Origin: Lepidodermella squamata
Lineage: Eukaryota > Animalia > Gastrotricha
Reading direction: 5' to 3'
Length of the DNA: 64,000 nt
Assembly: GCA_047495785.1 (NCBI GenBank)
Contig: JBLDXI010000015.1
Span: forward strand, 2,108,001 to 2,172,000
A program made the position numbers and the translations under genes. This document shows positions 10,090 to 41,542 of the stretch, piece by piece (positions within the stretch are counted from its first letter, which is position 1; each line of letters starts with the position of its first letter). The notes beneath the pieces are model-generated. The model saw only the letters and a list, made by a program, of their open reading frames with translations, was not told the origin of the DNA and made no database searches.

Positions 10090-11310
10090 ATGAACTCTCC
10101 ATCTGAGAGCAAGTACTTTGTCCTTCGGGGCGGCGATGAATTCGACGACGATTTCGAGAGCGGCAAGATGGCTTTGCAGCTCAAGCAATGCGGCCTGCCA
10201 GCGGCGATTGTCGATGCTGTTTTCTCGAAGGAAGTCAAGGCGTCTTCCGCCTTCCTGCCCATCGCGTCTGGCCTCCTCGAAGTCTTCGGCGACTACCAAC
10301 TTCGCGAGCAGACCCTCTCCCAAATGGTCACCGAGGTCAAACTGGAGCGTGACAGCCTTCGCAACCAGCTTCGGCAGGCCAGTCAAAAGCAGCGTACCAT
10401 CCTCGCCGAATTCCAGGACTTCAGATCTAACGCAGAGCGGCAGCGGCAAGAGAAGGACGAAGAAATCACCAAGCTGAAGAATGCCCTGACAATGCTGTCG
10501 AAACAAGTCGCGTCAATCGCCGCCAACAACGACAAGGCCATTCAATCGATCGGCCGCGTCTCAGACCTGGAGAACCAACTCAAATCATCGCAGACGCTGA
10601 TCGAAGAACTGAAGGCGGCTCTCGAGCAAGAGAAGGCCAATGCGGTCGCGCTTCAGGTGAAATACGATGCGAAGCGAACGTATTTCGAGACCTTCGCGAA
10701 GCAAGTCGAGGAGGCGAGCAATGCGAAGAAGGCAACGATCAAGAACCTCACGGCCGAGATCGAGAAGCTTCGAGCCGAAAATTCTGCCTCCCGGCTGTGC
10801 GGCAGTCCAGCGAAACGGCCGAGGTTGCCAGGTAAAATAACTCGTAAATTTTTTAGCAGGCATTTTTATTTTTTTTATTTGAAAGAAAAACCGTCCGAGC
10901 CTGTGATGGATCCCGAGGAAATGAAGCAGCTGAATACGACGATCAATACCCTTGTGAGCGAACTTTCAAAGCGAGGCGAAATGATTCGTAGATTGGAGGA
11001 AGAGGTGGCTCGACTTCGATCTGACCTCAAAGTAAACACCGCAACGCCAAATTTTCACAGAAAAAATCACGACATACTTTTGTTTTAGAAGCCCGTCAAT
11101 AATCCTCAGCAATCGAATTCAGAGGAATCGTCCAAGCTCGCCGAGGTTAAGCAATTAATTGCTCTACGGCTTGAGCTCGAAAAGCGCTTGATGCGCCAGA
11201 ATTCTGCCGGGTTAAAGGAAACTGAAGAGCACGTTTTCTTACAGGCATTATTGGATCAACTCGACATTTGGACCGCCAGTCACACCTCGCTGAAATCGCC
11301 GCAAACTTGA
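10090..11310 (+). CDS. CC1: coiled-coil protein, divergent first member of array; exons 10090-10831, 10886-11031, 11089-11310
   Basis: Long heptad-rich ORF; canonical introns give an in-frame product ending ...LKSPQT*. Weak version of the family N-domain (LKQCGLPAAIVD); NLS-like SPAKRPRL. Confidence 0.8.
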
Positions 11311-14300
11311 CGCCAATTTATTGTAGATTTATTGTAATAAGTGTTACTCCGCTCAACTGCATTTAGAGTGATTGATTTTTTTTGTATAAAGTCGAATATT
11401 TTTTTATAAACTATTTTATGCCACTGAACCACCGATGAAAATTAAATTGAAAAGAAAGAATGATGTTGGGAATAAAATCAAAATCGCTGGCGCTGCGAGC
11501 GACCTAATTTTGGACAAAAATGACCTTTTTGAACTAATGACTTTTGCGGTCGCGCCGGCGCGTGATTATTAGAGGAACACGCAGATCAGGTTGTTCCATT
11601 CGAGCGAAAGAAATCGCCGTCTGCTGCTCAAATTTCTAAAATCTCCAAGTTTTAAAATAGACACCGGGAGTGTTTGATTAGTCACTCGGTATAGACAGCG
11701 TGGCATGAATAAGCGTATGAGTCGGTGCGAATTATTCAGCCGGATGAGAGTATCAAAATTTAATTTGCCGCTATTTACAGCAGTATGAATCAGAGATAAT
11801 GTTTCAAAGTGGCGTGCTTTTTTCAAAAAATACTTTAACAGCAGAAGAAGAAGCAGATTTCGTGATTCAACATGAATGACTTCGCTTATTTTAGGAACGT
11901 ACCGAAATTTAATAACCCTTATTAGAGGAGAAAATTATAAAATTGTTGGGATATGTTTCAACCAAAAAATTCTCAATCATGATCAGTCGTAAAATTATGT
12001 GCCTTTTTACCTATATCCCTAATTATTTATTTTATGTAATGTTACCTCGAAGGTTAAACATTCGAATATCAAAATATCTGCGATTGATATTGAAATTTAA
12101 AGCGAACCTCCATTAAATTTTCGAATTTCATAAACTTTTCTTAAAAATCAAAATATGAGAGCGATGGCTAAGATTGGCACAGGTGATTCCTAACAAAAAA
12201 TCACGGCGATTGAGATGATTCTCGAGAGAAGCAATGAATCAAAATACGAAAATCGCCTATATGTCTACTCATCTAAAATAGTGAAACCATCATTAGTTTA
12301 ATGCTTCTCAAAATCAGACGAGATTTAGCTCTTTCGATGATTATTTAGAAAATTAGAATAGTTTGTTGAAAGATGTGCAAGGTGGAATTATGCGAATTAT
12401 TTTTGGGACAAAAAGCTTGATTGAGGTGTTTTCGAATTTAAGCGAATTTAATTTAATGGCAATTTTCTTGACAGTTTTTAAGCCTGCCCATGATTCATTT
12501 TGTGACTTCAATTGTGGTCGCGTGTTCATTTGGCATTCTTTCAAATTGCCACACCGTTGCTATTGCGCAATTTTTGTTATCAATTATTTGTGAAAAAAAC
12601 GTGACGCAAGAGGCGACCTCGTTTGTTCATGCTTTTTCAGCTTTACTTTTACTTCATTTTTTGACCTTTTTCTCTCAGAGCTCAGAGTGGTTGACTCAAT
12701 ATTCGACATAATGGTTTCGTTTGCTTATTCGTGGTCGTAAAAACGCTTCCAGGAAATCGATTCCAAGCGCGCACGAAGTGCACTGACCAGTCTAGAATGA
12801 TTGTTTTCCCGACAATAATGCGTCTTCCGGTGCGGCAAATTTTTATTGCAAATTTTTGCGCTACTGCTCGTATGTACAACACACAATCAAGGAATGCCGA
12901 TGATGACGGTGCACTCGCGCCTTTTCCGCTGCACGCTGCGGCCGCCAGTACCACTAAAATTCACTACCAGCCGTGGCGACATCGATTTCAACTATTGATG
13001 CGCTGTTTTCTATGGCATCGCGCGCTTGTTATCTATCCACTGTGCAATAAATTGGTTGCCAATCAATGGTACCTGCTGAATCATCATTCATGACAATTTG
13101 CCAATTTGTTAAGCCCATTTAATGATGACGACTACGTCTTTCATTGCGAGGATTTTTATTACCAGACCATGTGCGCAGATTTATTACTACTACCAGTGAC
13201 CCGAGGTCATAAGGCGTGTTTCTAGTGGCGAAATTATTGCTTAACCAGCCCTTATGAAACACGTGCGTCGTGTTTATTCGTCGTTTTCTTCCTCTTGATT
13301 TGTGTGTGTAATGTGTGGCATGCTCAAGTCAGCAGCTAATTTTAGCGATCAGCAAAACCGCAATTTTGCTTCGCTACAACAGATAATCAGGTGCAGCGTG
13401 CGCGTCGTGACGAAAATTAATCAAGCCAGTTTCACTCTCGCCTGTCGTAATTCGAACTACTTTTCATCATTTCATCATCATCATCGTCGTCGTCGTTAGC
13501 TGGTCAATAGAGCAGCATCTTCATTTCCTGTGTTTTCTTGCAACTCACCTTTAACGAAATTAAGATCGATTTTCAGCCCCCGCGATTGTTTGTTGCCTTG
13601 TTCTCACTTTAGCTTTTAGATCAGAGACGCAGCCTCAGTGCGTTTTTCAGCTCGCGCACGCGATCTGTGCCATTTTGCGCAACACGTGCTGCTGCTGCTG
13701 CTGCTGTCCAAAAACAACTCGCAAACAACAATAATGAAAAGTCCTGCTTAACAATCTACACTAGCCCGCCAAAAATTATTCCCTGATAAGATAAAACTCC
13801 ACGTTTGTCAGCTAAATGATCTTTTTATCGACAGATTTTTATCTGTGAAACACCACCTACGCGGCCTGCTTGGGTGTTGTTTGCATGAGTGGCCATCTCA
13901 ACCAGTCATAAAATCGCGTCATGGACTTTGTGCTTGGTGAAAACACGCCCGTTTTTTGTTAATTATTTTATGTTACGACCAGCTGAAGTTTTTTTAATCG
14001 CAGTTCTTGTTTCATGAACGACTGGGCGAGGCAGAAACACACACGTCCATTTGGTATTAGTACTCCCGCTCTATTCATCTAGGAACAATATAAAGTAGCA
14101 TAGAATATTCCCATAGAGACACAAATGCCGCGCTGCATTCAATATTTAAGTAAAATGCGGCGCCTCTTGGGTTTCTTTCCTCGTGCATGTCAATGCAAAT
14201 TTTCTTGCATTCATGAACTGGAAAAAATTGAGAATTTTGCCTTCTTTTTCTTCTAGTAGGCCTCAAGATTTTATCATACGTCATGCATTGTTAATTTTTT

Positions 14301-16202: not shown

Positions 16203-16479
16203 GAATGGCAGAAATTTCATCGAGTTGAGGTGCGAGTCGGCGAAAATCATGATCAATGATCGCGTATTTATCATATGCATCGCTATTACTTATACAGGTC
16301 CTGTTGTATTAAAAAAACACAATAAATTATATTCTGAAAAATGATGCGATGAATGGAGGAAAAAACTGGATTATTTTGTGCCTGCTCCTTTATTAATATT
16401 GTTTTATTGAAACAGAAGATGCTGGAGAAAAATGGTCATTTTTATTTATTTATTTAGAATTTGAGGTCATCCTTAAAAA

Positions 16480-19400
16480 ATGATCGATTTAACTGAGGAA
16501 GATTCAGATTATCGGCAGAAAATGTTAGAAGCCGACATTCCGTTGAACATTATTGCAGAATGCGAATCGCGGCCGATTTTAGCCGAAATGTTGATTGTTT
16601 ACGCTAAGTCGCGTAAATCTTACGAAAATGAGTTGTTATCACTCGTCATCGACGTGAAAAAACGCGCTGAAAAGAAGCGATTTGAATGCGACAAGGAGAT
16701 GAGCCGCTGCGAAAATTACGTCCTCTCATCCCAAAATTCTGAAATCGAAGCCGATAAGCTGCGTCGGCAAATCGCGGATATGAAGGCGCACATCGAGACG
16801 CTCAGTTCCGATTTACTCGCGCGCAACTCGGAACTCGCCGATTTGGCGGGCGATAATCGCAAGTTGGCGGAGGATAAAGCCAAGGCTGAGGCGATGTCAC
16901 GCCGGCTTAAAGTCTCGTTGACGCAAACTGCAAGGGACCTGGCGGCTTTGCGGAGAAATGATTCGATCAGGGCGAAGACGCTGGCTCGCAGTGCTAAAAT
17001 GAGTCACTCGTTATGCCGTAGAAGGCTATGTAAGTTTCGGTAAATTTTCGGGTCCAAAGTCCAGCTTAATTTTGATTAATTCGAGATGCGAAATCTTCCT
17101 ATAATGGAAAGTTGAATCATTGAATGAAAAAGTTTAAAGTTGGGTTAAATATTCTGGAAAGTTCAAGGACATTTTTGTTAAAAGGCTTCCTGATATCTAA
17201 TACAGCTTGTCCCAGAAGTTGCCCGGCAAATTTTTTAAGAAAATTCAACTATTTTTGTTAAATTAAACCTACCGAGAGAAAACTCAAATTTTTACCCATG
17301 ATTTAACCGAAGAAATAAAAAATTTATCGGAGAATACCCGGAAACCGGAAAACCCCGATTGCAACCGGTTCGGTAATTGTCGGTATTTTACCCGGTTGGA
17401 ATCCCATTAACAATAAGTAACATTCTTGATTACTATGTTCGTTATTTTCGAATTTTTCTAAACTTTTACTTGCCATGAGATGTGACGTCTCTCATTTTTA
17501 GTTCATTTGAAGTTTCTGAACCATTTTCCGTGTATTTTCTGTGCTTGCATTATTTATGGGACACGCTGTGTTAGAATTGTTTTTACTTCAGTTAGTGCAG
17601 AGGTTGGTTCAGAATACGCAGACCCGATCCAACCCAAAAAGTGACCGAGGGACCGAATGAAGTAACCCTATATGACAGTAACCCACCTATCATTTTTATT
17701 TTTATTCCTTTTCATTGGACGTTTTTAAAAAAAAACACAACCGTGAACATGGTCGGATTAACCCTCCGGCTGCCCCTGGGCTTTTGGCGTTTGGCGGCCC
17801 CATTTTTTTGCAAATTTCAAGAAAAAACGAAAAAAAAATTATTTTTAATTTGACTTAAATGGGAGGTTAGAAAAACGTTTAGAAACGCTTCTTTCGACGT
17901 TTTCTGTCGACGAAAATGTCAATAATACGCTCAACATCCAATGACCTTAATATGTCGGATTCCAAGGCCAGAATCATTGGATTGTTCAGCTCGTCCTGGC
18001 CCGTCGATGATCTGAGATCGCCCTTAATTAAGGCCAATTTAGAGAAGCTGCATTCACCGCTCAATCCTCATTGATAGCTGAAAGGGCCTTTCGAAAAACT
18101 TTCGACGCTGGCGGCCCCTTTTGACTGGCTCCAGCCCTCCGAGCCAACGCGTTAATCCGGCCCTCTCTGTGAAGCAGTCATTTTATGTAAAAGACAAGTT
18201 CATTTCTTGAGACCTTGTCGGGCATCTTGTGCAACAAGAACCTCCGATTCAAAAGTTACTGGGTTCATTCCAGCCCGGTCTTTTCGGACAACTTTCCCTG
18301 CTAAAGAGAAGTGGCGTTCTGATTCGGATGGACACCCTTGAATAACGAGTAGTTAGTTACGCGGCAATTCGACTGGTTACAGGAAACAATCCGCTGTTTT
18401 TGCCCCGCCACTTTAGAGGGTAAAAAATGTCGCCTTCTGGAATTTCCACATCTAGCGCTTTGAATTTGACCAACTCAGAGTCGTAGTTTTGAGATTTTTA
18501 TTTACAGGATGAAAAACAAAAAGATGTTCATTCAGGTGTCCTAGAGTAACTTGGGCAATAACGTTGTCAAAGTTGAGCTTCCATTATTTCGTTAAGAACG
18601 TTGAACGAGGGCAGATCGCAGTTACCCAGAATGCGGATTGGTGTCTTTTAGGGCAGTGGCGAGCTTGGAAACAGAAGGCGCTTTCTTGACCGTCATCGAG
18701 TTCATCTTGAGTTTCGTCGAGCACGGGTAGATAATTGCCATTGCTAGGCATCATTTCGGTTGGTAGAACTTCCTAGAATAAATTACCGCATCGTTGCCAA
18801 CTTTTCAAGATTTTGGCACGTTCTGCTTGAAGCTGATCTCAAGCGTGAGAGCAAGAATACTGTCAACGATTTGATGATGCTTTCTCGGCCACGTTTTCCT
18901 GATCTTTTTCCTACGCCTTCATAAATTGCTCCGTATGGTAGCCATGGTGCCGAGGTAATTAGCCATGCCCCACCTCGGAGGCATCTTTTGGCGTCGGGAA
19001 ATTGGTGATCGCAGAGACTTCAGCAGGATCGGTAGAGATAGGGCCATTGCGACCCAGAATTCGCCCTAGAAATCGCACGGAGTAACAAAAGAGATTTGTC
19101 TTTTTATGATGTAACTTCAAACCGGATTTCCTGAGACGATTCAAAACCTCGCGACGGACCTGAATGTGTTTCTCGAAAGTCCTCGCGAAGATGTGAAGAT
19201 GTGACTTCGCCCTTGATCAAGTTAGGAATTACGTCGCGCTGAGCTCTGTTTAGCTCAACGGTGCCGAAAAACTCTGATTGAAAAATACATCGACTCCTAG
19301 TTTTATGAAGATTTAATATAATTCTTACCAAATCAGAACAGCTAATTTCTAAAATCATTATTTTTTCATCTTTATAGCAACTCAAGACGCCAAATATACC

Positions 19401-22400
19401 AGACTAAACTCGAAATTACAGCAAGAAATCAAAGAAATAACCCGCGACCGAGATTCTTGGCAACAAAAAGCTACATCGATACAGCGGAAATGTACCGGGT
19501 GCCGCGGGCTGAAAGAGCGCCTCGAAAAAGCCGAATTCGAAATCGATGTGAAAGATCGCATTGTTGAATCTCTGAAAATCGATCTCCGCCTCGCTGAAGA
19601 ATCGTCTACCGCTCATGATAGTAACCATTTTCGACCCATTTTTTTAAGTTGTTTTAATTTTCTCTTTTCCAGACGAAATTTGTGACCTTCGAACTAAACT
19701 AGCCTTGGAGGCGACAACTTCGGACAGAATCAAGTCTGAATTTCTGGCGAAAATTGAATTGATATCTCAGGAGCGAGATTCTCTACGATTCAGAATCGAT
19801 TCGATGAGTGCCGTCCAGTCTGACAGTGGGGCGCCTATATTCTGCCTCGACTGCCCTATCATCAAGTCTCGCCTTGAAGAGGCTAAACAGGTGAAATTCG
19901 GCAAAGTTTAAAAACAATTTTTTTCTAAATTTTTCTGATTTTAGAAATTGGCTGATCTTTCATCTGGAATTCAACCTCATCAAATCGATAGCGATGAAGT
20001 TTCGAAGCTGAAACAGGCCCTTGAAGACAAAAAATCTGAATTGGTTGAAGTCGAAAATAAATTAAATCAGATCATCTCCCAAAAACAGGACCTGGAATCC
20101 TGTTTATCCAGAGCTGAGTCCACAATTCGATCGAAGGACCTGGAAATTTCTGTCATGAAGAAGGCCTACGACCAGAAAAGGGCTGAATTAGCTGGTAAAC
20201 TCGAAGAGCTGGAGGGTAAATTAGAAAAATTCTTCAACCAACGAGAGGCGATGGTTAAGAAATTGGCAGATGCTGAAATTTTGATTGAGAAATTGCAAAA
20301 TTGCGGAAATTGTGGAACTCTGAACCAGCAACTTGATGATTGCAGAAGGTTATGTGATTCCATGAAAGGCGTCGTCAAAATGCTCAGTGAAAGGCTGGTC
20401 CAAAACGATTCATTGCTTCAAGAAAAATCTAGTAACAAACCTCAAAGATTCTCCATTTTTTGTTTTAATTTTTTTATTTGAAGGCAAACTGGCGGAACTT
20501 CAACAGCAATATACTGCGCTTCAGTCGAGCAGCTCTGAAAATTTGAGGTCGGAGATCGATAGTTTGAGGGAAAAGCTTCTTGATTGTGAAAATCTGATCA
20601 ATACAAAAGCTGGTAACATTTTTCTAATTATTCAATCAAAATCTTCAACGAAATGTATCAGCTGAATTTTCCGATCTTCAAAATCGTTTTGATGCTCTCA
20701 ATGCGAGACCTGCTAACTGCGAAAAGTGCGAGAATCTGAGTTCGCAGGTTGAAAAATTGAAGATAACTGAAGGTGTGGTTGACAAATTTGCCCAAAAAAA
20801 TAATCTGATTTCATTTTTGTATTCAAGAGAAAGTCGCCGATTTACAGTCCGCAAACAAAGCTCTTGCCGATGCTAAAACTGAGCTTGAGAAGGAACGAAA
20901 TGGTACTATTCAAACTCTGAAGGACAAAATCGCAGAAATGGAGGCTTCGGCCGAAAGTTGCGCGAAATTGCGGTTGGAAATCGATCGATTGAATGAAAAG
21001 CTGATTGCTCGTGATAACCTCGTCAACACCAAAACTGGTAACTATTTTGTCGGCATTTGGTCGACTTTGATTTGTTGGATTGCCCTAGCTGAATTGCTGG
21101 GGCTTCAAAATCGATTCGATGCACTCAATGCGAGACCTGCTAATTGTGAAAATTGCCATTACCTTCGCATGACAGTTGAAAATTTGAAGAAATCAGTCGC
21201 TGATTTGGAGGAATCTCTCGCCCAATCGAAGTCCGAAAAAGTAGCAGTGGACAAAGAGCTGGAATCTGCCGTAAAATTGTGCGGAGAGAAAGAGGCGGCG
21301 TATCTTTCAATGCGTGAAAAACTCGTCAATTGTCAACGTCTTTTCGAAGCTGAAGAAGGTAGGTAGAAAAGTTTCCAGGGAATCAGCTGAATTTCCCCAT
21401 TTTTCTAGAAAAAGTTGCCGATTTAAAATCTGCAAACGAAGCTCTTTCTGAAGCGAAATCAGAGCTGGAAAAGGATATGAATAGTACTGTTCAATCGCTG
21501 AAGCATAAAATCGCGGAAATCGAGGTTTCGCTGGCGGCCAAATCTGGTAAAAATTGCTTTTTTCCCCATCAATTATACGCTAATTACTTAATGATTCTCA
21601 GATGAAATCGAATCGTTGGTTGAAAGCCACAATAAATCATTCGAAAAATTCAAGCGGAAGAATGGAAGTCTCAAGAAATTGTTGTCTAAATTGACGGCGA
21701 AAAAGGCGAAACTGGAGCAGCAGATTGATCGCGCTCAGAAGATCTGCGAAAAGCGAGAATCGGCCAAAATTTCACTGCGAGCCAAACTGCTTTCCGCATT
21801 GAAAACTCGCCTGAAAACTGAATCAGGTATCATTTTTATCGCCTAAAAAAAGTTTATTTTATTTTCTCTGATTTACTAGTTCTTCATGACACTCTTCTCG
21901 CTGAGAAATCGGAAATGGCTGAGCAATTGCAGGAATCGGTGAAAATTACCGAAAAATTGAAAGAAAGAAATAGGACTCTGAAACAGCGAATTGTTGAACT
22001 GAAGTCCGATCTCGAGGCGAAAACAAGTAAATTAACAAAATTAATCGTAAATAAAACGATATATTATTACGTTTACAGATGAAATAACAGATCTTCAGGC
22101 GCGAGCCGAAAATCAACCCTGTGAAGATTGTGATCAGCTGCGCAATCAAGTATCGCAGTTGGTAAAATTGGCTCGCGATCGGAAAAAGCAGCTCAATAAT
22201 TTGGAAGCGGTAAAGGCGAAGCTCGACGAGAGAATTGGTAACTTAATTGCGATCACAACTTGTTAAGGTTTTCATTCTGATTTTTTTCAGTGGAACTGGA
22301 ATCGCAGGTCGAAGCGGCAAAATCTCAACCTGTCAGTTGCACAAATTGTGAAGCGCTTTATGCTACCATCGAAAAATTGGAAAAATCGAACGCGAAACAT

Positions 22401-22850
22401 AAGGAACGCTTCAATGAAATTGTTTCAGATAAAGCTCAAGCCGATGAGCTAATTGGTAAGTGGGAATTCGAAGTTAAAAATTTGAGAAAACGTTGATTTT
22501 TTCAGAAAAATTGAGAATAAAAAAAGCCGCCTTAATTCAAAAGCTGAAAAATTCGAAGCGAAAATATATAGAAAGTTCGTGCACGGAATGTGTTGGATTT
22601 CAAAGTGAAATCGCCCGACTCCAGGCCGAATCTGAGTCCGTGTATAATTCTCTGAGGCGGAAGTTGGAAAAAATAGAGGTAAAATTCGCGAAAAATGATA
22701 TTTGTCCACCTGAAATTTTTTTCTTAGAAATTGAAAGCGAAAGTGTCCAAGCTCAAAGACTCAGCATCCTATGATGGAGTTTGCAGTGAAGAAATTTCGC
22801 CGAAGAGTGGGAAGCGGCGGAGACTGGTGGAGCGGAAAAACAACGAGTAA
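16480..22850 (+). CDS. CC3: ~1115-aa, 15-exon coiled-coil protein with eight CxxC motifs
   Basis: Exons 16480-17029, 19378-19620, 19673-19890, 19945-20431, 20484-20612, 20662-20772, 20828-21037, 21089-21358, 21409-21546, 21602-21826, 21880-22026, 22079-22237, 22291-22455, 22506-22678 and 22728-22850 splice in frame (3348 nt). Family N-domain present; C-terminal SPKSGKRRRL. Confidence 0.8.
17265..17534 (+). repeat. Dispersed repeat (MITE-like end), second copy at 51352-51626
   Basis: Colinear similarity between the copies: ...cggtattttacccgg..., cttgattactat, gccatgagatgtgac, gtttctgaacc(a/c)ttttccgtgta. Confidence 0.7.
17748..18165. mobile_element. Non-autonomous TIR element (hAT-like MITE)
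   Basis: Ends catggtcggattaac ... gttaatccggccctc; degenerate 8-bp flanks accgtgaa / tctgtgaa. Confidence 0.55.
18205..18530 (-). mobile_element. hAT transposase remnant (C-terminal dimerisation domain), frameshifted
   Basis: Minus strand encodes ...PLKWRGKNSGLFP... and ...IQGCPSESERHFSLAGKVVRKDRAGMNP..., matching the hATC SERxFSxAG motif. Confidence 0.75.
18959..19205 (-). mobile_element. Ty3/Gypsy reverse transcriptase fragment
   Basis: LNRLRKSGLKLHHKKTNLFCYSVRFLGRILGRNGPISTDPAEVSAITNFPTPKDASEV is typical of the Gypsy RT C-terminal/thumb segment. Confidence 0.85.
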
Positions 22851-23024
22851 TTGTATTTCAAAGTTTTGCATAATATAAGTTTACAGCCTTCAATCTAATT
22901 ATGTGATCCTGATATTGTGAAATTCAAAATTAATTATTCCGGAATAATAACTGCTTATATTTGTTGATAAAAACATTCCTCTTATTTTTTTAGATTTATT
23001 TATAATATGTGAAACTTCCTTGAA

Positions 23025-26000
23025 ATGGCGGATGAATCATTGATGAGAGAGATTGAAGAGCAGCGGAGGCTGACCTTGAAGCGGAAAATGGTCGAATGGG
23101 ACTTGCCATTAGAGGTCGTTTTATTCTGCGAATCTTCCCCCTCAGCCGCAACCGCCTTAATCAATCATATTTCGGGGTTAAGAACTTACCAGGAAGATTT
23201 ATTGGCCCTGTTAGCGAATATGAAGCGGAAATACGAAGCCGAGAATATGACTGTTCTAGCGGAAATTCACCGATTGACCGAACAGTTGAAGAATGAGGAT
23301 CTTCGAAGCCAAGATGAGATCGAAAATTTAAAGTCAGAAATCGAATCTCGTAACGAAATGATTGATCAACTCAATAAAAGAGTCGACGATTTATTTATCG
23401 ATTTGGAGTGCAAAGATGCCGAAATTGACCAGTGGAGAGTTGATTTCGAAGTTCTATCCGAAAACAAAACCAATATCGATGCGGCTTTATTGCGATGTCA
23501 GCGGGCTGTGGTAGATTTACAGCTAAAGTTGGAAAATGAAAAGCGATCGAAAATTGCGTTTGCTCGCAGATTGCGTTCAAATTTCAGATGCAGGGTTGCA
23601 AAAATCGAATTGTATGTTAACTTTATTCCAATGAGTAATTTAGTTCTATTTTAAATCAATTTCAGAAGACGAACACGCGAGTATGAAGTAGGCCTTGGAA
23701 AGTTATGTTATCACCTTTCGGTTCTTCAAGAGGAAAATCAGTCCTTACGTTTGAGAAATGAGTGTCTTGAAGATGAAAAGTCCAAGCGAATTCCGAAATC
23801 GGTAGTCAGATCAAAAGACGGTATGTTACTATGGATTTCCAATTTCAAAATAATCAAGTATTGTAATTTTAGTATTGATTGCGCAGCTGAAAGTTGAACG
23901 AAAAAAGGAGCGAAAGAAATTCGCGCGAATTAAGGCAGAATTATGTGCGAAAATCGATCGATTGAGCAGTGACCTGTCAATTTTGGAGTCGGCAGCCGCG
24001 TTGAAGGCTGAACCTCATCCTCCTGTTTGCAATAACTGTTCCACCTTGAGGAACGACCTGGGTCAACATTGCAGGGGTGGAGAAGAACAAGTTTTGAATG
24101 AAGCCGTCCGCAGTTAGCTTTGTAGTAACGAAACCAACTTTTTGCTCGCTAGTTCGAGGAAGTCGTGTAACCTGTTCGTTTCGTGCGTTTTAGCTGGGTT
24201 CAATAGCTGAGTGAACAGCTGGTGGAATATCCGAGGTACGATTTCGAAAGTCCCGTCGACAAAAATTCGATCAGCGGCTTCAAGCCGAGCCGAAAATCGC
24301 CGCTGCGTCGCCATTATCGGCAAAATCGATGTCGATCAAAAACTCTTTGCTATCCAAAGTTTTGATGAACCGGCCGTTCAAACTCTTCGCTGTAGCGTGC
24401 TCCATACTAGACATGAAGTCGGGTTCGTTTGCCTCGAACGCGGTACAAGATGCTTTGAACAGCGGGATATTTCGGGTCCATTTGTTCTTAAATTAAGTGA
24501 CGAACGCTCCGTGCACTCACAAGCCGGGTCCGTCGGAAGACTGAGCCCTAAAGCTAAGCAAGAGATACAACAACAACCCTGTCGAACGCCGGTTAGCTAA
24601 CGGTGAGCTAACTTCTTAGTCACCAGTGGTGATGTCACGGTGACTATGATATTGGGCGAACCAGTAGCTTACGGGAATGTCACCGGTGACAGAGTTTGAT
24701 CTTAGATGAGACTATGTTAGGTATAAATCACATGTCATTTGTCGAAGTCAGATCACAGATAAGACTATAAGGTATAAATCACATCAAGTCACATATTAGT
24801 CTCGATATGCAGTGTCAAATTCCAACTACTTGTTGCTGGGTCGGTCGCGATAGTGGGGCTGGTCGGGTTGGTGGGTGTGATTTTTTTCCCACTATATTAA
24901 TCAATTGATAGAATCGCGTGCTGCCAAGCCCCATTGATCCCATTGATGCTATCATATCGACCATCAGAGCAACACGTAGTTGGACTTCGACTCCGCAAAA
25001 TCTGGCCTAAGATGCAGATGTCAGATAAGAATGTAAGGTATGAATCTCAAGTCTGATGTCAGATAGGACTACAAGGAGGTAAAAATCACATGTCATCATC
25101 GCCATCATCAGGCGACTTGATCATAGAAACGTGGAAAGTGTCGTCATCGCTTGAATGATCGGACTCCCCGCTGGCCACTCAGCCGCTTTGCGACCTCGAC
25201 CGCGAAACGGGTGTGCGACATCTTGACCGACATCTTGGCAACCCGACAATTTGACCCAAGACATTTTGTAACATATATTATTATCGGAATACTTGGGTCA
25301 AGATGTCGATGAGGGCAGTGTGTCTTAGGTCAATATGTCTTTGGGTCGAAATGTTACGTTAGGCCAGGACGTCTTGGGTAAAAATGACGCTATCCCCGCG
25401 AAACGTAGGCGAAACGTAGCAGAACAAATCTGAAAAAATTTCTACATTTTTGACGCACGAATTTGTTTTTTATTTCATCCTGAGTATAGCAAAACTGAAA
25501 ACTGAATAGCTTGTTATGGATAGTAGTGAACGCGTTTGTATCTCCATTCATTACTTACTTTTTGCCATAGTATGTACGAATTGCCGAAATGGCGTACATA
25601 TTTATGTACGAATAGCCATTCCGATTAAAGTTTTCCTTTTTTATTTCCATTTTCTAGATAAAATTGTGCGGCTTGAAACTGCTGTTCTATCGAAAAATGC
25701 CGTAATTGGCGAATTTGAAGCTCAGCGTGATTCGATGGAGGCTGAAAGAAATGAATTTTCCAGTGAGTTTTATTATGCTATTCTTATCAATGTCTATATC
25801 GCTAGTAATTTTGTCAGATTTTCGACCTCAGTCGTTAAAATACTTCCTCTATTTTAGTTTTATTCTGCAGAACACTCATTTTACAGAAATCAAAATTGAC
25901 TGGAGAAGTGTAGAATGGATTATGAAAGCAAAATATTCAGAGGCTGAAATTAATGAAAATTAAGGCGGATTTTTCATCTTTTTATTTATTTTTCATTTCT

Positions 26001-26392
26001 GATTGCACTGTGCTAGTAAATACCTATTGTCGTCAGATTTTGGGCGATTTTTATCGAAAAGCTCTCACGATTGAAATTATTAAACTTTTGGTGTAGGAAA
26101 AGTGTCAGATCTGCAGCAGAAGATTGCTGATCAAGAGTCGATTAATGAAGCACAGCGAAAAGCGGTCGACGATCTGCAAGCGGAAAATCGACGCCTTGTT
26201 GCTGTTTTACAAGACGCTGGTCATCGAATCCAGCGAGATATAGCAACTGCTCTTCACAACAACTCATCAAGTCAGCAAAACGATGCGCCAGTTCATTCGA
26301 CACCAAACAATCCTCAAATTGGAAATTTGAGTGCTGAGCTGGCATGGCTGCAAAGCAGTCGACGATTGCGGCTCAATTTTATCAAGAAGTGA
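23025..26392 (+). CDS. CC4: coiled-coil family member; exons 23025-23611, 23666-23820, 23873-24061, 25658-25762, 26097-26392
   Basis: Family N-domain; exon structure parallels CC5; one CxxC (CNNC). The exon 3 donor (gtcaac) is weak and abuts a MULE fragment. Confidence 0.7.
24114..24570 (-). mobile_element. Mutator/MULE transposase fragment
   Basis: RIFVDGTFEIVPRIFHQLFT matches the MULE DGTFxxxPxxFxQLFT motif around the first catalytic Asp. Confidence 0.8.
25209..25396. mobile_element. Small foldback MITE with target-site duplication
   Basis: GGG...CCC ends; internal GACATCTTGACC-like repeats inverted between the arms; direct repeat cgcgaaac at 25201-25208 and 25397-25404. Confidence 0.8.
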
Positions 26393-26524
26393 CTTGAAAA
26401 TTATTTATTTGCGGTTTTTGCGAAATTTGTTGTGATTTGATTGTAGCAAATTTCTTTATTCAATTGATTTTCTAGGATTTTCTATCATTATGCCTTGTAA
26501 TTTTTTAGATTTTTATCATGTGAA

Positions 26525-29500
26525 ATGACTGATAAATCGTTGGTTGAAGAGCAGCGGAGAATGACCTTGAAGCGGAAAATGGTCGAATGTGATTTGCCAT
26601 TAGAGGTCGTTTCATTCTGCGAGTCTTCCCCCTCTGTCGCATCCGCCTTAATCAATCACATTTCGGATTTGAAGACGTACCAGGAAGATTTGACGGCCCT
26701 GTTAGCGAATGTCAAACTAAATTACGAAGCAGATAACTTGACTTTTTCAAGGGAAATCCTTCGATTGACCGAACAGTTGAAGAATGATTTTCGAAGTCAA
26801 GAAGAAATCGAACGTCTGAAGTCGGAAATCGAATCTCGTGACAAGAAGATTGATCAACTCAATAAAAAAGTCGAAGATTTGTTGATTGATTTGGAGCGCA
26901 AAAATAGTGAAATTGAGCGGTGGAAAGTTGATTTCGAAGATTTATCCGAAATCAATAAGAAATTAGAGTCAAGATGTCAGGAAGAAATTGAGCGTCTAAA
27001 GTCAGATATTGAATCTCGGGACGAGAAGCTTGGTCAACTCAATAAAGCAGTCGAAGATTTGTTGATTGATTTGGAGCGCAAAGATGGTAAAATTGAGCAG
27101 TGGAGAGTTGATTTCGAAAATCTAACTGAAATCAATAAGAAATTGAAGTCAAGATGTCAGGAAGAAATTGAAAGTCTAAAGTCACAGATATTGAATCTCG
27201 TGACGAGAAGATCGGTCAACTCAATAAAAAAGCCGAAGATTTAGTCCGAAGTCAAGAAGAAATCGATCTTCTGAAGTCGCAAATCGAATCTCGTGGCGAG
27301 AAGCTTGATCAGCTCAATAAAAAGGTCGACGATTTATTGATTGATTTAGAACGAAAAGATGGCAAAATTGAGCAGTGGAGAGTCGATTTCGAAGATTTAT
27401 CCGAAAGCAAAGTCAATCTCGAATCGTCTTTATTGAAATGTCAGCAGGCCGTGGAAGATTTAGAGCTCAAGCTGAAAAATGAGAAACGATCGAAAATTGC
27501 GTCTGCTCGCGGAATTCGTTTGTTTTTCCGATGCAGGGTTGCAAGAATCGAAATGTAGGTCAAGTTGTTCCAAAAAACTCGATCGTTTATTTTCATTCAA
27601 TTTCAGGAGACGAAAACAAGAGTTTGAGGAAGCACTTGGCAAATTAAGTAATTACCTTACGATTCTACAGGAGGAAAATCAGTCCTTGCTTTTGAGAATC
27701 GAAGAAGAAAAAGCTAAGCAAATTCCGAAATCTGTGATCAGATCCAAAGATGGTATATTATAATGGATTTCGAGAATAAATATTCAACTGTTAATGTAGG
27801 ATTGATTGAGCAGCTGAAAGCTCGAAGAAAAAAGGAGCGAGAGAAATTTGCCCGAATTAAGGCGGTAAAATCAGGTATTAATTGTCACGATTTCATAATT
27901 TCCCATCATTTTTATTTCCATTTTCCAGATGAAATTTTGCGACTCGAAACTGCTGTTTTATCAAAAAATTCGGCTCTTAGCGAATTTGCAGCACAACGTG
28001 ATTCAATGAATGCGGAAAGAAGTGAATTATCTCGTGAGTTGTTTCACCTATTCTTTGAAATCTGAAGTTGAAATTTGCGGATATAGAATTGTTGAATGCA
28101 TTCACGAGTTATTTTTGTTAGATTTTCGATCGCCAAATACCTACTCAATTTCTGTCCTGCAAAACCTAAATTTGCACAAAGTCAAATTAACGGAAGGAAT
28201 TATAAATGGCAATTTTGGCAATTTTTCTGCATTTTCCAGCAAAACGAAAATTGTTGACTTGAAGGAGAATGATTTTCAGATTCCAAGATATTTTTCTTGG
28301 AGATTTGAATTTTTCACATTTCAAACCCTTAAGAGGCCCCCTTCCTCCAAAGACAGGAACCGACGAAGTCATTCATCAGTAAGCGTCATTCCGGATACCC
28401 TTTCTGTTCACCTTTCAGGATTTCAGGGTCAGAACTTGAGCCTCCGGTCTTTGGCCGTGATTTTTCGATATCGAAAAAGTGGATACATCCTGACTGCGGC
28501 AGCTAATTCGATTCTTTTGCATCTCCGCAGAGGCTTTCTTCGTTTATTTATTTTAAAATGTCTTGCAATTATCGCATTAGCGATCTGAGAAAATATTCAG
28601 AAGAACAGACAGTACATTTTGAAAGGCGCCTCACTGACGAAACAAGGTACTTTTCAACCTTAGAAGACTCGAGAAATTATTTTAACAACTTTCCTATCCA
28701 TGAGATAAGGTGTATAAGGAATAAGGACTGTAGACAGAAGATGCATAATTAAATAGTAGGTTTTGTCGGCTTTCAAGCGAAGCGATCTACTCTTCTGAGA
28801 CTTGAAAATGCAGCCAATTAAGCTACTGCACCTTTTTTAACAAGGAACAAACCTTTTTAACAAGGTTTGAAAAGAAAGCTTGTTATCTATACTTGTACTC
28901 CCAAATCGCGTACACCATTGACAGATTCTAGCTTAGCACCATCGATATTGTAGTCTAAAAGGAATATGACGAGGCCCTAACCTAAGAACGCTTAGGTTTC
29001 TTGGCGTTTGAAGCCCGGATCGCCGCCATCGATCAGGAGAAATAAGCAGGCAGCTGCGAAAACGTCTCAATCGGTGCCGTTGGATTGCCTTGGACATGGT
29101 TGAAGATGTACTTTCAGCTTCTCTTCTTCCATTAGCACCCGGTATCGGTCTCTTAGTTGGCCGCGAAGTTCTTCATTCATTGATGTATATGTCGTATGTA
29201 ATCTTGGAAATCATGTATTGTTAACAATAAATGACCCGATTTCATGTAATGTGAACAATACATATGTATTCTTAGAAACACATGTCATTTCATCATTTAT
29301 TATCGGAATTAAATGAAAATGTCTATGTATTATCAGAAAAATATAACAAATCGCTGCGAATGTGTTATGTAAAGTGAGAAATCGTGTTAATCGCAGTTGA
29401 GGTTGTCACAATTTTTGCCTGGATGACACCGGCTATTGCAGATCAGTTGATTCTTACGGCACCTGCAGTTGGCCCCACGTCCGCTGCTCTTGCACCCACT

Positions 29501-32235
29501 CCGACAGTTCCGACAGTGTTAGAATAATGACGACCATCCAGCCGCCCCTTCTTCGTGCCCAACTGAACACTCCCATCTTCAAACACCTCGAGACAAACGC
29601 CGTCTCGTCATTATTATAACACTTATAAGTTGTTGGAAGAGAAATTCTTCGCGCCGAGTGACGTTGTGATTTGTAGAAAGATCGTTGTGCACTTCTGGAA
29701 TTTTTATGAGAAGACGCATTTGCTGAACTACAGATCGACCTGCTATCATCAATTGCCAGAGAGAGTAGAAGACTCGGGAGAACTAAATAGCAAAGTCTCA
29801 ATAAATGCATGGCAAAACATAGACATTAACATACTCATAGAGGCAGCAAATTCGGCGCGAAGAATTTCTCTTCCACCAACTTACCGTATATACCGGAATA
29901 TAAAGGACTCCCTACTATTTTTTTCAAACGGTCCGAAAACCCCTCTCTTCAATTCAGGGCCTCTCTTTTATTTAGGGCCTCCCTATTATTTTTTCTTCGC
30001 CCCGAACAAACCCGAGGTATCACTGAAAATGCTGCTAATCACCATCAAAAGAGAGGATTTTCATGGCGATAATGCCTCGCACCAGGTAGTCGGGTCACTT
30101 TTCCCTCAAGTTTCGCTTAAGCTGTATGCAAACAAGGTTAAGAGGGATTAAGGTGAACAGCTAATTTGTACCCGCGCGCGCATTTCGGGGTGGCGTCAAG
30201 GGTGTTGGTAGCAGACCCTCTCTACAATTTAGGTCCTCCCTTTAATTATTTCAAATGCCTCGTAACCCTCTCTACTAAATAGGTCCTCCCTTCTAATTAG
30301 GTCCTCACTTATAATCCGGTATATACGGTATAAGTTTTAGAATAATGACGAGACGGCGTTTGTCTCGAGGTTTAACAAATTCATTTCCCTCTTCTAAAAA
30401 ATTTCAAGCGAAAAGCATACCTTGATGATCGGTTCAAATCGCGCATTTTTTCATAGAATCTGACTGCCCCATCATGCGAAAGCAGCTCGTTATGTTTCAT
30501 CGCAGTCGAAGCTCTGTATTTCGGAAAAAACCTAAACAATCGAAAATTTTTAAATTCACAATATAGCCGTAGAAGCTTTCGGGGTTGAATGCCGAGTATA
30601 GATACAAAGGTCCAAAATTCGTTATTGAATCGGCGATATGCGACAATTGGTGCATAGCGAGGGTGATGTATTCTTGGCCATACAGCTCGCCAAATTCGAC
30701 CAGCCACTCGTTGCACATTTCCCGAATGTCGGCAATAGAGTGGCCGAACAAGTTCGTATGGCAAGAGATGAAGAGAATGTAAGAAAGTCGATCAAAATTT
30801 TGGGCGTAGGCACTGCCGAGGCCGCTGTTACGAAGGATGAAAGGACCGGTGATGAACGTGATCATTGAACTTCCAGGTTGATCATTGAACAGTTCTCGCC
30901 AGTTTTGAAAACCGTTAGTAGCTTATCCAAGTCGATGTCAACCATTCGGTTGCCGATTGACAAAACCCAAATTTCAGTAATCGGTTCAGTTGTGCAAATT
31001 AACGACAAGCGAAGCCGGGTTCTCGTCAGTTAGCTTCATGTTGACATCACGCGCTATCCGCTTCCCTTCCTTATCCACCTCGTCGAACGAAGCTAATTCT
31101 ACTGCGTGTCATTTGAGCGAAATTGCGTTGAATGAAAACTCGACAACCCTTCTAGCCGGGAAGGTTCTTTCTCCCTTTAGGGCGACAGACTGTTTAGCGA
31201 ACCGGTCGATAGTTACCGAATTAACTAGGCTGTTGGTGATGAGCAACGGCTTTAATTGAGAAAAAACTTGCTCCGCCCCGGTTGAGGTGGAAAGGGTGAT
31301 GAGCCTGCCAGCATAGCAGCTAATGCCGGGAAATGCCATGGGTGACGTTGATTAAGCGCCATATGTGGCCCCACCATTGCAGAAGCACCAAGCCTTCGTC
31401 ATCGTCTGGAAGAACGATTTTCTTCGCATGGGCGACGCATCTTGTTCGCCACGTGGCTGTTTTAGCTTTATCTAGTCTTTTCAGCCACATTTCTACCGTT
31501 TGCATAATAGCCGAAATCTCGTACATATTTATGATAGCCTCACTCTGGATGGCGTGGCACTGATTTTTTTGAGCGCGCTATTTCGGAAGTCAACCTTTTT
31601 CACTGGTTGAAGCCGAATTTCTCAGAATCCTTGGGATAGTCGATTATTTTTGGCAATATTTTCAAGATATAGCCTAACCATAGAGATCAGATTAAAACAG
31701 AGAGGAAACTCGATGCAAAAATTTTCTACAAAAAGTCATCGAGTTTTTAAGGCGGATTTTTGAATTCAGAATTATTTATCTATTTATTATATTTAAAAGT
31801 ATTTGTTGGTTAATCTGATCTCTATGCTTCTAAGCCCACTTTTACGTATTATCGGGTAAATTTTCAAAGGCTAAAAATCACTGAAAATTAGGATTTTTTA
31901 TTTCTGATCGGAAGGTCCTAGTAAAAAATCTTCTCTTAAAATCTAAATTTAGTCAATTTAATTTTGGTGTAGGACAAATTTCAAATCTACAGCAAATGAT
32001 CTCTAGTCAAGAGTCGAAAATCGAAGCGCAACGAAAAGCGATTGAAGATCTGAAAGCGGAAAATCGACGCCTTGTTGCTTTTTTACAAGACGCTGGCGAT
32101 CGATTCAGGCGAGACATAGCAGCTGCTCTCAACAACAGCTCGTCGAGTCTTGAAGACTCTTCTTCTTTCAACACATCGTTTCCTCAGCAAAACGACGAGC
32201 CTATTTATTCGACACCAAACAATTCTGAAATATGA
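26525..32235 (+). CDS. CC5: paralogue of CC4 with internal 180-nt repeat expansion and an apparent frameshift near 27185; last exon 31973-32235 beyond a 3.9-kb TE-filled intron
   Basis: N-terminus nearly identical to CC4, and downstream exons match CC4 exon for exon. A 2-nt insertion (tcaCAgatatt vs tcagatatt in the previous repeat) shifts the frame. Could be a pseudogene, a truncated 239-aa product, or an assembly error. Confidence 0.65.
26791..27410 (+). repeat. Coding tandem repeat, ~180-nt (60-aa) unit x ~3.5
   Basis: The unit R[SC]QEEIERLKSEIESRDxKxxQLNKKVEDLLIDLERKxxxIExWxVDFE recurs near 26791, 26971, 27151 (partial) and 27247. Confidence 0.85.
29585..30371. mobile_element. Non-autonomous element with ~75-bp TIRs; right TIR interrupted by a younger MITE
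   Basis: acctcgagacaaacgccgtctcgtcattatt...gaaattcttcgcgccga (29585-29658) is inverted at 29851-29883 plus 30331-30371. Confidence 0.85.
29884..30328. mobile_element. Tc1/mariner-superfamily (Tc2/pogo-like) MITE, TA target duplication
   Basis: ta-CCGTATATACCGGA ... TCCGGTATATACGG-ta, with internal (g)gtcctccc-like subterminal repeats. Confidence 0.9.
30497..30880 (-). mobile_element. CACTA/EnSpm-like transposase fragment
   Basis: FGELYGQEYITLAMHQLSHIADSITNFGPLYLYSAFNPES matches the LYG..HxLxH..GPL...F.FE motif of animal EnSpm/CMC transposases. Confidence 0.75.
31679..31826. mobile_element. 148-bp MITE-like element
   Basis: Perfect 16-bp inverted termini catagagatcagatta / taatctgatctctatg. 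Confidence 0.6.
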
Positions 32236-38600: not shown

Positions 38601-41542
38601 AACTGGATTAGACAGACCAAGAGGTATTAGAAAAAGCTTACCGTTGACGAATTCCGGCCTAGAACACCGGGGAAAACTTTTTTCATCCGACCAATGTCTT
38701 ATTTCATCCGACAACCAAAAATGTGACTAAAACCAGCCGACTCGCTTTTTCATTCTTTTCAAAAAATTACAGTACAAAAGTGACTACTCGGGTCGCCATG
38801 AATCTTTAACCATAAAATTCCAATTTTATGGTTAAAGATTCATGGTGCATAAAAGGGTTATGCCCCTACGGAAAAATCGAACTTGGGAAAATCGAGAAAA
38901 TCGATATTTTCATGTCGGATGATTTTAGTCACATTTTTGGTTGTCGGATGAAATAAGACATTGGTCGGATAAAAAAAGACATTGGTCGGATGAAAAAAGT
39001 CACACCCAGAACACCTGCGCACCTTCACCGTTGCTGCGACCTTATTCCAGTTGAGATTAAAAATCAATCAAGCATCACCTAAATTACACATGAGAATCGC
39101 TTATATGATATGGCTGACTAAATTGATTCTCTCATCTTCTCTCATTGCAATCATACAAAATCACGAATTCACACAACAATAGTATAAACAAATAGTCGTT
39201 CTTTCGTTGAGCTCCTGAAATTCAAAATACAAAAAGTCAAAATGAGAAAAGTGGGAATGTCGCATATTCTTACCTCGTCGTGTGCTTTTTTGATATCTTT
39301 AACTGCCTGAAAACAGAAAAAAGAACTAATGTAAAATAATTATCAGCGGAAAATTCGAATTTAAAACAAAAGCTACGACGTAAGACTTATCACAGCAATC
39401 AAATCACAGAGAGGAATTGAATGCACCACGTCAATAACTCGGTCATGTACCATGCATTACCTTGCTTCGTTTGACTTGACGAAAATAACTGCGAAACATT
39501 CCATATGATAGTTAAAAACAGAAATCAGATCACTTACATCCTTCACTTGCGTTGCGATATTGCCGCGCAGCGTCTCAATGGCAGCCTCGTGCTCCGCTCG
39601 CAACTTCTCGAAGTCCGATTTGTGCTCGGCTCGCAACTTCTCCAGCGAGGCCTGGTTCTCAGCGCGCATGCCGCCATGTCCTCACGAATGTGACGAATTT
39701 CGCTTAGAATAGTCGCTACTCCGAAGTAACTGCGAAACATTTGAAAGTTGAAAACAGAAATCAGGACACTTATACATCCGTTATCTGCGCAAGGATATCG
39801 GTATGCAGCTTTTCAAATTCAGCTGCGTTTTCGCGCCGAATCGCAGCCATTTCTTGCTGGATAGCTAGCTGCGTGGCAGCGTTTGCAGCAGCAGCGGTAT
39901 CTGCAATCAATTTGTTGAGGGTACGAAATTCACGAACCCCGTCGGCTAGACCTGCCTCCATTGGAATTATTGGAATATTCAATAGCAAAACATAAAAATT
40001 ATAGTTTTGAGTATGAAAATAAGAAAAAGAATACTGTAACTCTTGTCAGGCAGGTTATAGTGAGCAATGACTACACGAGGGAGCAAAACCTTCGATGAGG
40101 TGATTAAAAGAAGATGTTAATGACAAAGTGGATCAAGTAATCTGTAGTAACTGCGAAACATTTCAGTTGAAAGTTGAAAACAGAAATCAGGCCTCTTGCA
40201 TCCCCCTCCTGCGTGAGGACATCGGCGCGCAGCTTTAAGGTAAGCGTCTATTTTGAAAACTCGACCCTTTGCATCGGTTGTGTGAATGTGGCAGCGGTTT
40301 GTGAGAATTAGGCGTCAGCACGGTACAGCACCTGAAACGTCCATTGAAAATACCATAGACTATTTTCGAACCTCTGCGGCAGCCACGGCACTGCGCTCGA
40401 TTGTATCGTTCTTCTTCATCTAAGCGAGGATTCAGGATCGGATTTAGTGTAAATGGATGCTGGGCATAACCACTATCAACCAAAAGATGAAAGCCGGGAA
40501 AATTATCGGTGAATATTACCTCTCACGCCAAACCCCACTTTTCACCTGTATTTTTCACCTGTTGACGGTCATTTTCGAATAATTTTTGGCCCCCTTCTGG
40601 TAGGTATCAGAAGGTAAGGCCTAGAGCATTATCAGAGTTTTTAAATGAGTCAGGGGTCCGCTGTCCGAGGAAAAACAGTTTTCGAGCGTTGATTCTTCTT
40701 CTCTCATTTCGTTTCACGAACGAACGACCGAAAATCTTACAAAATCACGAATTCACATTTAACATATTGGTATTGGTATTGGATGTATAGAGTGAGAGTT
40801 TTTTCTTGCCGTTCATAGCTGCGTTGTCGGCCCGCATTTGCTCTAAAGCGTGGTCGCCGGCGCGAATTTCTCGTAAAAAGGCCGCCATGTCGTCATGAAT
40901 TTGATTACGAATTTCGGAAAAAAATCACTAGCGTTGCCAAGTGTTCAAAACATGCACCACGTCGAAAACTCAGTCATGCGCCATCATTACCTTGGTTCGT
41001 ATCACTGGACAAAAAACAGCAAAAGGTTTCAGTTGAAAGTTGATAACAGAAATCAGGACACTTGCATCCCACATCTGCTTGGCGATATCGACTCGCAGCT
41101 TTTCACTGGCTGAAGCAATATCTCGGCGAATAGCTTGAACGGTGACAGCGTTGTCTCGGCGAATTGCTTGCAAGGTGGCAGCGTTTGCGGCAGCAGATAT
41201 TGACAACGATTCGGTCTGGCTTGCATTGAGCACACAGCCGGCCAGTGTTGAAAAAAACCAAAATAAAAATCACTTTAGGGATTCAAGTTAGGAGTTTGTC
41301 TGAGCGAGGATACAGATAAATTATTTGCCACTGATTCAATTAGAAAGAAAAAAAATTTTGTTCGAAAAATGAAAAGAAAAATTTTGAAATTAAAAATTAA
41401 AAATTAGCTTGTCTGTCACAAAAGCGGATTTGATGTCTCCGTGATAAAACCGCTGAAACTGAATTTAAAATCAAATCAATTCTTATAAAAATATTAGTGT
41501 TAATTTTTTCTAATTTTCTTAGATGCAGCGTCCAGCAATTAA
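35611..41542 (+). CDS. CC8: family member; exon 35611-36652 plus tiny last exon 41523-41542 after a 4.9-kb intron
   Basis: Family N-domain. The ORF becomes intron-like at t|gtaaattt (36653); a strong acceptor at 41521-41522 gives in-frame YAASSN* directly before CC9. Confidence 0.75.
38669..39007. mobile_element. Foldback MITE with 8-bp TSD and a perfect internal hairpin
   Basis: TSD agaacacc at 38661-38668 and 39008-39015; arms ttttttcatccgaccaatgtcttatttcatccgacaaccaaaaatgtgactaaaa inverted; 24-bp perfect stem at 38796-38845. Confidence 0.9.
40300..40510 (-). mobile_element. PIF/Harbinger transposase fragment
   Basis: LLVDSGYAQHPFTLNPILNPRLDEEERYNRAQ...YGIFNGRFRCC matches the HARBI1-type DSGY...YN...FGxLKxRFRCL motifs. 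Confidence 0.8.

Follow-up and report, generated by a model that had tools for sequence, protein, structure and literature searches.

An orphan coiled-coil protein of Lepidodermella squamata with eight CxxC motifs at heptad joints: candidate inter-chain zinc clasps

A tandem array of coiled-coil genes lies in a 64,000-nucleotide stretch of the genome of the gastrotrich Lepidodermella squamata (assembly GCA_047495785.1, contig JBLDXI010000015.1, positions 2,108,001 to 2,172,000; the window hereafter, in whose numbering all positions are given). One of its genes, CC3, encodes a long rod that is punctuated by CxxC motifs, pairs of cysteines with two residues between them. Judged from its sequence, CC3 is a lineage-specific member of this genome's orphan family of proteins with a small head and a coiled-coil rod. 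The CxxC array on this orphan rod is new to this gene; cysteine-pair clasps on coiled coils as such are already known. We infer, tentatively and at somewhat less than even probability, both a metal and a locking role for the motifs: the four thiols that two chains would bring together at each station would bind one zinc ion, and the clasps so formed would nucleate and lock the register of each rod segment.

The CC3 gene and its CxxC motifs

CC3 comprises 15 exons on the plus strand (16480-22850), which were chained from a three-frame reading of positions 16400-22900 through frame-keeping GT-AG introns, and its coding sequence of 3348 nt translates to 1115 amino acids. An earlier note on this DNA had described a coiled coil of about 1115 residues with eight CxxC motifs, and this independent GT-AG model reproduces both the length and all eight motifs. 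Thirteen of the introns measure 49-55 nt and the first 2348 nt; 12 of the 14 are in phase 1. Contigs of the sequencing run X1 (2015) confirm seven introns: numbers 1, 5, 8, 9 and 10 appear as joints, and at numbers 13 and 14 the contigs have loose ends (22455 and 22678) that read into the next exon. The joints 17029>19379 (intron 1) and 20610>20661 (intron 5) are present in these contigs, and a single contig of 1020 nt links exons 8, 9, 10 and 11. The remaining seven introns were assigned from the reading frame, the GT-AG ends and the uniform length of 49-55 nt. Since its contigs are spliced, run X1 holds RNA; the contigs cover the exons bearing CTGC, CLDC, CGNC and CENC, and CC3 is an expressed gene. 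The parts of the gene are as follows, with the amino acid (aa) at which each motif starts.

16480-17029, plus strand: exon 1, open frame from ATG, aa 1-184, a family-type head and then the first coiled-coil stretch
17030-19377, plus strand: intron 1, 2348 nt, spliced out in RNA run X1, holds high-copy repeats
19378-19620, plus strand: exon 2, CTGC (aa 222) at 19491-19502, RNA contig over 19440-19612
19673-19890, plus strand: exon 3, CLDC (aa 322) at 19843-19854, RNA contig over 19759-19888
19945-20431, plus strand: exon 4, CGNC (aa 457) at 20302-20313, RNA contig over 20119-20431
20484-20612, plus strand: exon 5, first copy of a duplicated block (exons 5-7)
20662-20772, plus strand: exon 6, first copy of the duplicated block, CEKC (aa 562) at 20718-20729
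20828-21037, plus strand: exon 7, first copy of the duplicated block (exons 5-7)
21089-21358, plus strand: exon 8, second copy of the duplicated block, CENC (aa 669) at 21145-21156
21409-21546, plus strand: exon 9, second copy of the duplicated block (exons 8-9)
21602-21826, plus strand: exon 10, coiled coil without CxxC
21880-22026, plus strand: exon 11, coiled coil without CxxC
22079-22237, plus strand: exon 12, CEDC (aa 924) at 22120-22131
22291-22455, plus strand: exon 13, CTNC (aa 979) at 22338-22349
22506-22678, plus strand: exon 14, CTEC (aa 1043) at 22580-22591
22728-22850, plus strand: exon 15, a short tail bearing a single S-P site, the basic patch K-R-R-R and the stop codon, RNA contig 22726-22880

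The protein holds 30 cysteines (2.7%). When its sequence was shuffled, the mean number of CxxC motifs was 0.77, and eight were reached in none of 20,000 shuffles. Two further core cysteines (aa 470 and 474) follow CGNC in exon 4. Two other roles for the motifs were considered. The c-type haem motif (CxxCH) was ruled out, as only one of the eight motifs fits it (CENC followed by H); a bridging Fe-S cluster is possible in principle, without supporting evidence.

Read directly from the sequence, the N-terminus is acidic and has no hydrophobic signal segment. The earlier note had ended the protein at SPKSGKRRRL, but seven more residues follow KRRRL before the stop codon at 22848-22850. In this tail, which it read as a cyclin-dependent kinase site plus a patch resembling a nuclear localization signal, the K-R-R-R basic patch is present and S-P-K-S is no more than a minimal S-P site.

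Several features of the locus stand apart from the motifs. Behind position 20533 in exon 5, an X1 RNA contig carries an in-frame insertion of 9 nt and three nearby substitutions in a Ser-rich stretch; the insertion is probably an allele or strain difference that adds three residues. Positions 17300-17700 of intron 1 are a very high-copy repeat with many rearranged joints in the DNA run X2, whose depth reaches 13454 at 17300-17499 against about 60 in the flanking bins. Minus-strand open frames at 18959-19385, also in intron 1, look reverse-transcriptase-like by eye. Pfam gave no match to them at E up to 0.01, so a retroelement is read there by eye only.

Heptad joints, the predicted exon 8 dimer and exon duplication

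All nine motifs, the eight of CC3 and the CNNC of its neighbouring paralogue CC4, fit C-x-x-C-x-x-[L/F/I], and in a motif-anchored comparison hydrophobic residues continue after it at +4 and +3 spacing. The register assigned from downstream residues places the second cysteine at 'a' and the first at 'e' in all eight CC3 motifs with a window of 14 residues, and in seven of the eight with 21 or 28 residues, in agreement with the earlier note that a heptad resumes after each CxxC. The register assigned from upstream residues differs from the downstream one at every one of the eight, and each CxxC of CC3 therefore coincides with a heptad phase change. Proline or glycine occurs within or adjoining seven of the eight motifs: Pro lies 1-4 residues upstream of five, and Gly inside or beside two more.

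Structure, complex and database work was done exon by exon, and the joined protein was used locally for counts and registers. For exon 4 alone, AlphaFold 2 predicts (mean predicted local distance difference test, pLDDT, 88.7) a helix at residues 16-119, a break at 120-122 and another helix at 123-161. Residues 120-123 are C-G-N-C; the predicted break thus takes in the first cysteine and the spacer pair, and the new helix runs from the second cysteine.

A dimer model with zinc had been proposed in the earlier note. We modelled two copies of exon 8 (aa 651-739) with one zinc ion riding along, in three runs, together with three controls. The runs gave an interface score ipSAE (interaction prediction score from aligned errors) of 0.59, 0.59 and 0.60, and the best control one of 0.02. 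Of 30 proteins whose solved structure is a pair of one chain, 21 attain the mark of 0.59; of 23 with a single-chain structure, none does. Among eukaryotic proteins it is attained by 17 of 29, and by just 1 of 7 among those without an older solved relative. Contact agreement between the runs was at least 94%, and partner pLDDT at least 82. The lowest-error contacts pair identical residues (32-32, 39-39, 43-43, 36-36), and the modelled dimer is therefore parallel and in register. Its interface opens at residue 19 and continues with 21-22, 25-26, 28-29 and onward. Residues 19 and 22 are C669 and C672, so that both cysteines of CENC are in the predicted interface and the 18 exon-8 residues upstream of CENC are outside it; C714 and C731 also fall within it. 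The predicted model supports the geometry of a clasp, not the binding of zinc.

Comparison of the exons indicates how the motifs multiplied. In local alignments against shuffled sequences, the exon pairs reached z scores of 21.7 (exons 7 and 9), 19.3 (6 and 8), 11.7 (8 and 13), 11.5 (5 and 7), 8.8 (12 and 13) and 6.5 (8 and 12), and exons 6, 8, 12 and 13 are diverged copies of one CxxC module. One block occurs twice, at aa 501-621 and aa 612-782, its copies agreeing at 62% of 115 positions and differing by an insert of 53 aa. CxxC is kept in both copies; the single cysteines at aa 534 and 624 are unshared. Five of the eight modules carry the motif 14-25 aa downstream of a phase-1 intron, a spacing to be expected if a single exon had been copied as the unit. 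When the eight modules of CC3 and that of CC4 were aligned (11-67% identity to the first row), the two cysteines were the sole invariant columns. From these alignments, the CxxC enrichment arose by duplication, with the cysteine pair held while almost everything else changed. The motif exons 2, 3, 4 and 14 have no detectable similarity to the module; their motifs were either held still longer or gained independently.

Such copying could also have happened without consequence. A chance CxxC in one ancestral exon may simply have been carried along, giving enrichment without function; this would suit the common descent of exons 6, 8, 12 and 13, and CC5, a close paralogue, shows that such a motif can be missing. 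We consider a neutral relic very improbable. The copies have diverged to 11-32% identity, yet all 16 cysteines of the CC3 motifs were kept, and the motifs of exons 2, 3, 4 and 14 fall outside the module similarity. The strain or allele differences in the coding sequence point the same way: among the 40 of 97 differences listed, 18 are synonymous and 10 non-synonymous, and those in the cysteine codons C225, C714 and C927 are all TGC/TGT and synonymous, a weak support since 40 of the 97 are listed.

Proposed zinc clasps and the rival readings

In the mechanism that we favour, the CC3 rod was lengthened through duplication of short phase-1 exons, and each CxxC is a joint at which the upstream heptad phase ends, often with Pro or Gly. 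There the second cysteine opens the core of the following segment as its first 'a' layer, and the first cysteine lies one turn before it. With the two chains parallel and in register, as predicted, their CxxC pairs would face each other, and the rod, roughly 150 nm long, would carry up to eight stations at which four thiols surround the dimer axis. At each station a clasp of zinc and four thiols would nucleate and lock the register of its segment. Zinc is preferred at the stations because the lack of an export signal and the basic K-R-R-R tail make a reducing compartment likely.

A number of observations weigh against zinc clasps. The heptad registers come from a simple hydrophobicity score of our own, in which cysteines were ignored, and not from a calibrated predictor. 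By the downstream register the first cysteine, at 'e', is off the axis in a regular dimer, and a tetrahedral site would therefore need local unwinding. The residues between the cysteines are often acidic (E-D, E-N, E-K, T-E), which is unfavourable beside a ZnS4 centre. Exon 2 is modelled by AlphaFold 2 as one unbroken helix through CTGC (pLDDT 93.5), so that some of the motifs may not physically interrupt the helix. The complex tool scores the protein partner only, neither scores nor places the metal, and was calibrated without ligand. The motif is also unkept among the paralogues: where CC4 has P-P-V-CNNC, its close sister CC5 continues as an uninterrupted helix-like stretch, and the first exons of 14 other members hold no CxxC. 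Searches with exons 1, 4 and 8 found no orthologue of CC3 outside this genome. The earlier note's proposal of a clasped dimeric rod gains from the parallel, in-register exon 8 model, from the placing of the motifs at heptad joints, from the invariance of the cysteine pairs across the nine modules and from the synonymous differences in cysteine codons, and loses by the paralogues.

The earlier note had drawn on the zinc hook of Rad50. In Rad50/SbcC, two chains each supply two cysteines to one zinc ion, forming an intermolecular ZnS4 site (PMC9569753, PMC5093744), and the single CxxC occupies a hairpin, placed at the apex of the antiparallel coiled coil that links the two halves of an ABC-ATPase head (PMC9569753). 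The likeness to CC3 is a CxxC on a long coiled-coil protein and extends to the proposed chemistry only. Rad50/SbcC has one motif, in a beta-hairpin of an antiparallel intramolecular coiled coil, whereas CC3 has eight at helix starts in a predicted parallel dimer and no ATPase. No apex hairpin of the Rad50 type in an antiparallel coiled coil was found, the exon 8 model being parallel with motifs at helix starts, and none of the 15 exons matched the Rad50 hook, SMC or AAA in Pfam even at E up to 1. The comparison holds by analogy for the chemistry, and the architecture differs. CXXC-type and classical zinc fingers and the thioredoxin-fold CxxC likewise gave no Pfam match, and the flanks of the CC3 motifs are modelled as long helices.

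Coiled coils clasped by cysteine pairs offer a closer comparison. Laminin, COMP and the matrilins, which are extracellular, carry disulfide knots of paired cysteines where their coiled coils end. In designed CxxC coiled-coil metallopeptides, a Cys-x-x-Cys in the core of two strands takes up a soft metal and so drives folding. These peptides are synthetic and place their cysteines in the 'a' and 'd' positions of an unbroken heptad, whereas the CC3 pair straddles a phase change. Fibrinogen has paired cysteines a few residues apart, at the start or end of heptad segments, that lock its chains in register (PMC5713436). Knots of this type are the closest match in placement, since the paired cysteines of CC3 stand exactly at a heptad-segment boundary. 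They belong, however, to secreted proteins, with disulfides formed in the endoplasmic reticulum at one or two sites per rod, whereas CC3 lacks a signal peptide and counts eight such sites; no laminin, thrombospondin (TSP) or fibrinogen domain was found by Pfam in the 15 exons. Overall, we class CC3 with cysteine-pair clasps on coiled coils, here in a new orphan protein.

Alternatively, the apposed cysteines, a-a' and possibly the first of each pair as well, may form inter-chain disulfides, as constitutive staples of a hardened structure or as reversible redox joints. The geometry would be identical to that with zinc. About 7 of the 10 other rod cysteines of CC3 are also on 'a' or 'd' positions, as befits such cross-linking, and C714 and C731 are in the modelled interface. 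Precedents exist in the disulfide rings at both coiled-coil ends of fibrinogen (PMC5713436) and in ZMYND11, a nuclear coiled-coil homodimer with symmetric, redox-dependent Cys-Cys' disulfides (PMC12839526). The ZMYND11 coiled-coil-MYND region has single cysteines seven residues apart on a short coil next to the MYND finger, and its sequence is unrelated to CC3. We think disulfides unlikely. CC3 lacks a signal peptide and its basic tail suggests a nuclear, reducing location; acidic neighbours raise the thiol pKa; and single core cysteines are not conserved between the duplicated blocks, so general cysteine cross-linking is not what is selected.

It is about equally unlikely, in our view, that the chains are not cross-linked at all and that the cysteine pair starts or caps a helix, receives a partner protein, or is S-acylated so as to lay the rod on a membrane. 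The motif does always stand at a helix or segment start, and the rest of the family forms rods without CxxC. A cap or docking site, however, leaves unexplained why two cysteines three residues apart are the sole invariants, and the motifs do not stand in the hydrophobic or basic, membrane-proximal surroundings that acylated cysteines usually have.

Zinc could also be bound within one chain if the rod zigzags as helical hairpins or three-helix bundles, so that each motif meets the next but one (for instance those at aa 924 and 1043). The last three motifs are separated by near-equal segments (55 and 64 aa), four of the seven motif intervals are within 100-135 aa, and the Pro and Gly breaks could serve as turns. 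Other spacings are unequal (135 and 255 aa), though, and the exon 8 model, on which the runs agree strongly, pairs two parallel chains in register along 70 residues; such zigzag folding is quite improbable.

To return to inter-chain zinc, the stations resemble one another and over much of the rod recur roughly every 100-135 aa, and out-of-register pairing between dimers could join rods into a zinc-linked lattice. Zinc sites shared between molecules are described as uncommon and seldom studied (PMC9569753), and in the literature searched for zinc-bridged natural coiled coils the single Rad50 hook alone turned up. It is conceivable, if rather doubtful, that inter-chain Zn(Cys)4 sites staple CC3 at many stations, each on a heptad phase change. 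It would then be the first parallel coiled coil in nature held in this way, and exon duplication within one orphan gene would have produced a register lock that depends on metal.

The orphan family and what a clasped rod would mean

Residues 1-97 of CC3 align with the heads of four paralogues encoded on its own contig (E 1.2e-7, 1.2e-6, 3.5e-5 and 7e-3), in agreement with local tblastn. CC3 shows the features that define the head-plus-coiled-coil family, namely an N-terminal head of about 40-60 aa, a long rod and a place in a same-strand tandem array, and its exons 2, 4 and 8 are modelled as helical. About 15 head-bearing coiled-coil frames lie in tandem on the plus strand at 10072-61238, mostly as one long exon, unlike CC3. 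CC3 shares with them the head, the plus-strand array and the lack of relatives elsewhere; it is two to three times longer and has 14 short exons behind an intron of 2.3 kb. Cysteine makes up 0.96% of the first exons of 14 paralogues (4700 aa), which hold no CxxC, against 2.69% and eight motifs in CC3 (Fisher p 2e-5). The frames and the motif of CC4 are located as follows.

near 10090, 23025, 26525, 32380, 34530, 35600, 41710 and 46250, plus strand: starts of head-bearing frames
near 48380, 49575, 54330, 56740, 58240, 59760 and 60867, plus strand: further starts of head-bearing frames
24028-24039, plus strand: CNNC of the neighbouring paralogue CC4, the only CxxC module outside CC3

As the earlier note had it, CC4 keeps one CxxC. 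CC4 and CC5 (23025-32232) are close tandem duplicates whose similar last exons stand far downstream (26084-26389 and 31885-32232), and each seems to have a long intron or unrecognised middle exons. Their automatic models are incomplete, that of CC4 being mis-ended, and served only to compare the sequences around CNNC.

A search of the whole genome with a profile built from the nine modules found those nine only, and exons 4, 8, 10 and 12 of CC3 have no paralogues in their own genome. Exon 1 gave no match by phmmer among 1.84 billion representatives, exon 8 none in a word search, and a metagenome locus scan with exon 4 confirmed none. For the 15 exons, Pfam returned nothing above its cut-off, with sub-threshold generic coiled-coil matches only. 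A profile search of the PDB with the nine-module alignment likewise returned generic coiled coils only, at E 0.057 or higher, and the look-alikes of exon 8 in the ESM Atlas, where recognition was low, belong to generic coiled-coil clusters (HOOK, golgin, intermediate filament).

Elsewhere in the window, a run of seven cysteine codons stands in an open frame at 13687-13710 on the plus strand; it is probably a simple repeat of the TGC/TGT type and not a coding feature. On the minus strand, coiled-coil-like frames at 39460-41269 share an Ala/Asn-rich motif, A-A-N-A-A-T...I-R-R-D/E-N-A, and are unrelated to the head family. A CxxC on the plus strand at 40143 lies opposite minus-strand coiled-coil-like frames and was not counted.

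CC3 shows a fast-evolving orphan family gaining a structural device by copying one short exon. If zinc clasps are confirmed, they would be a new natural way to set and hold the register of a very long, internally repetitive coiled coil, and would provide a template for designed metal-switchable fibres.

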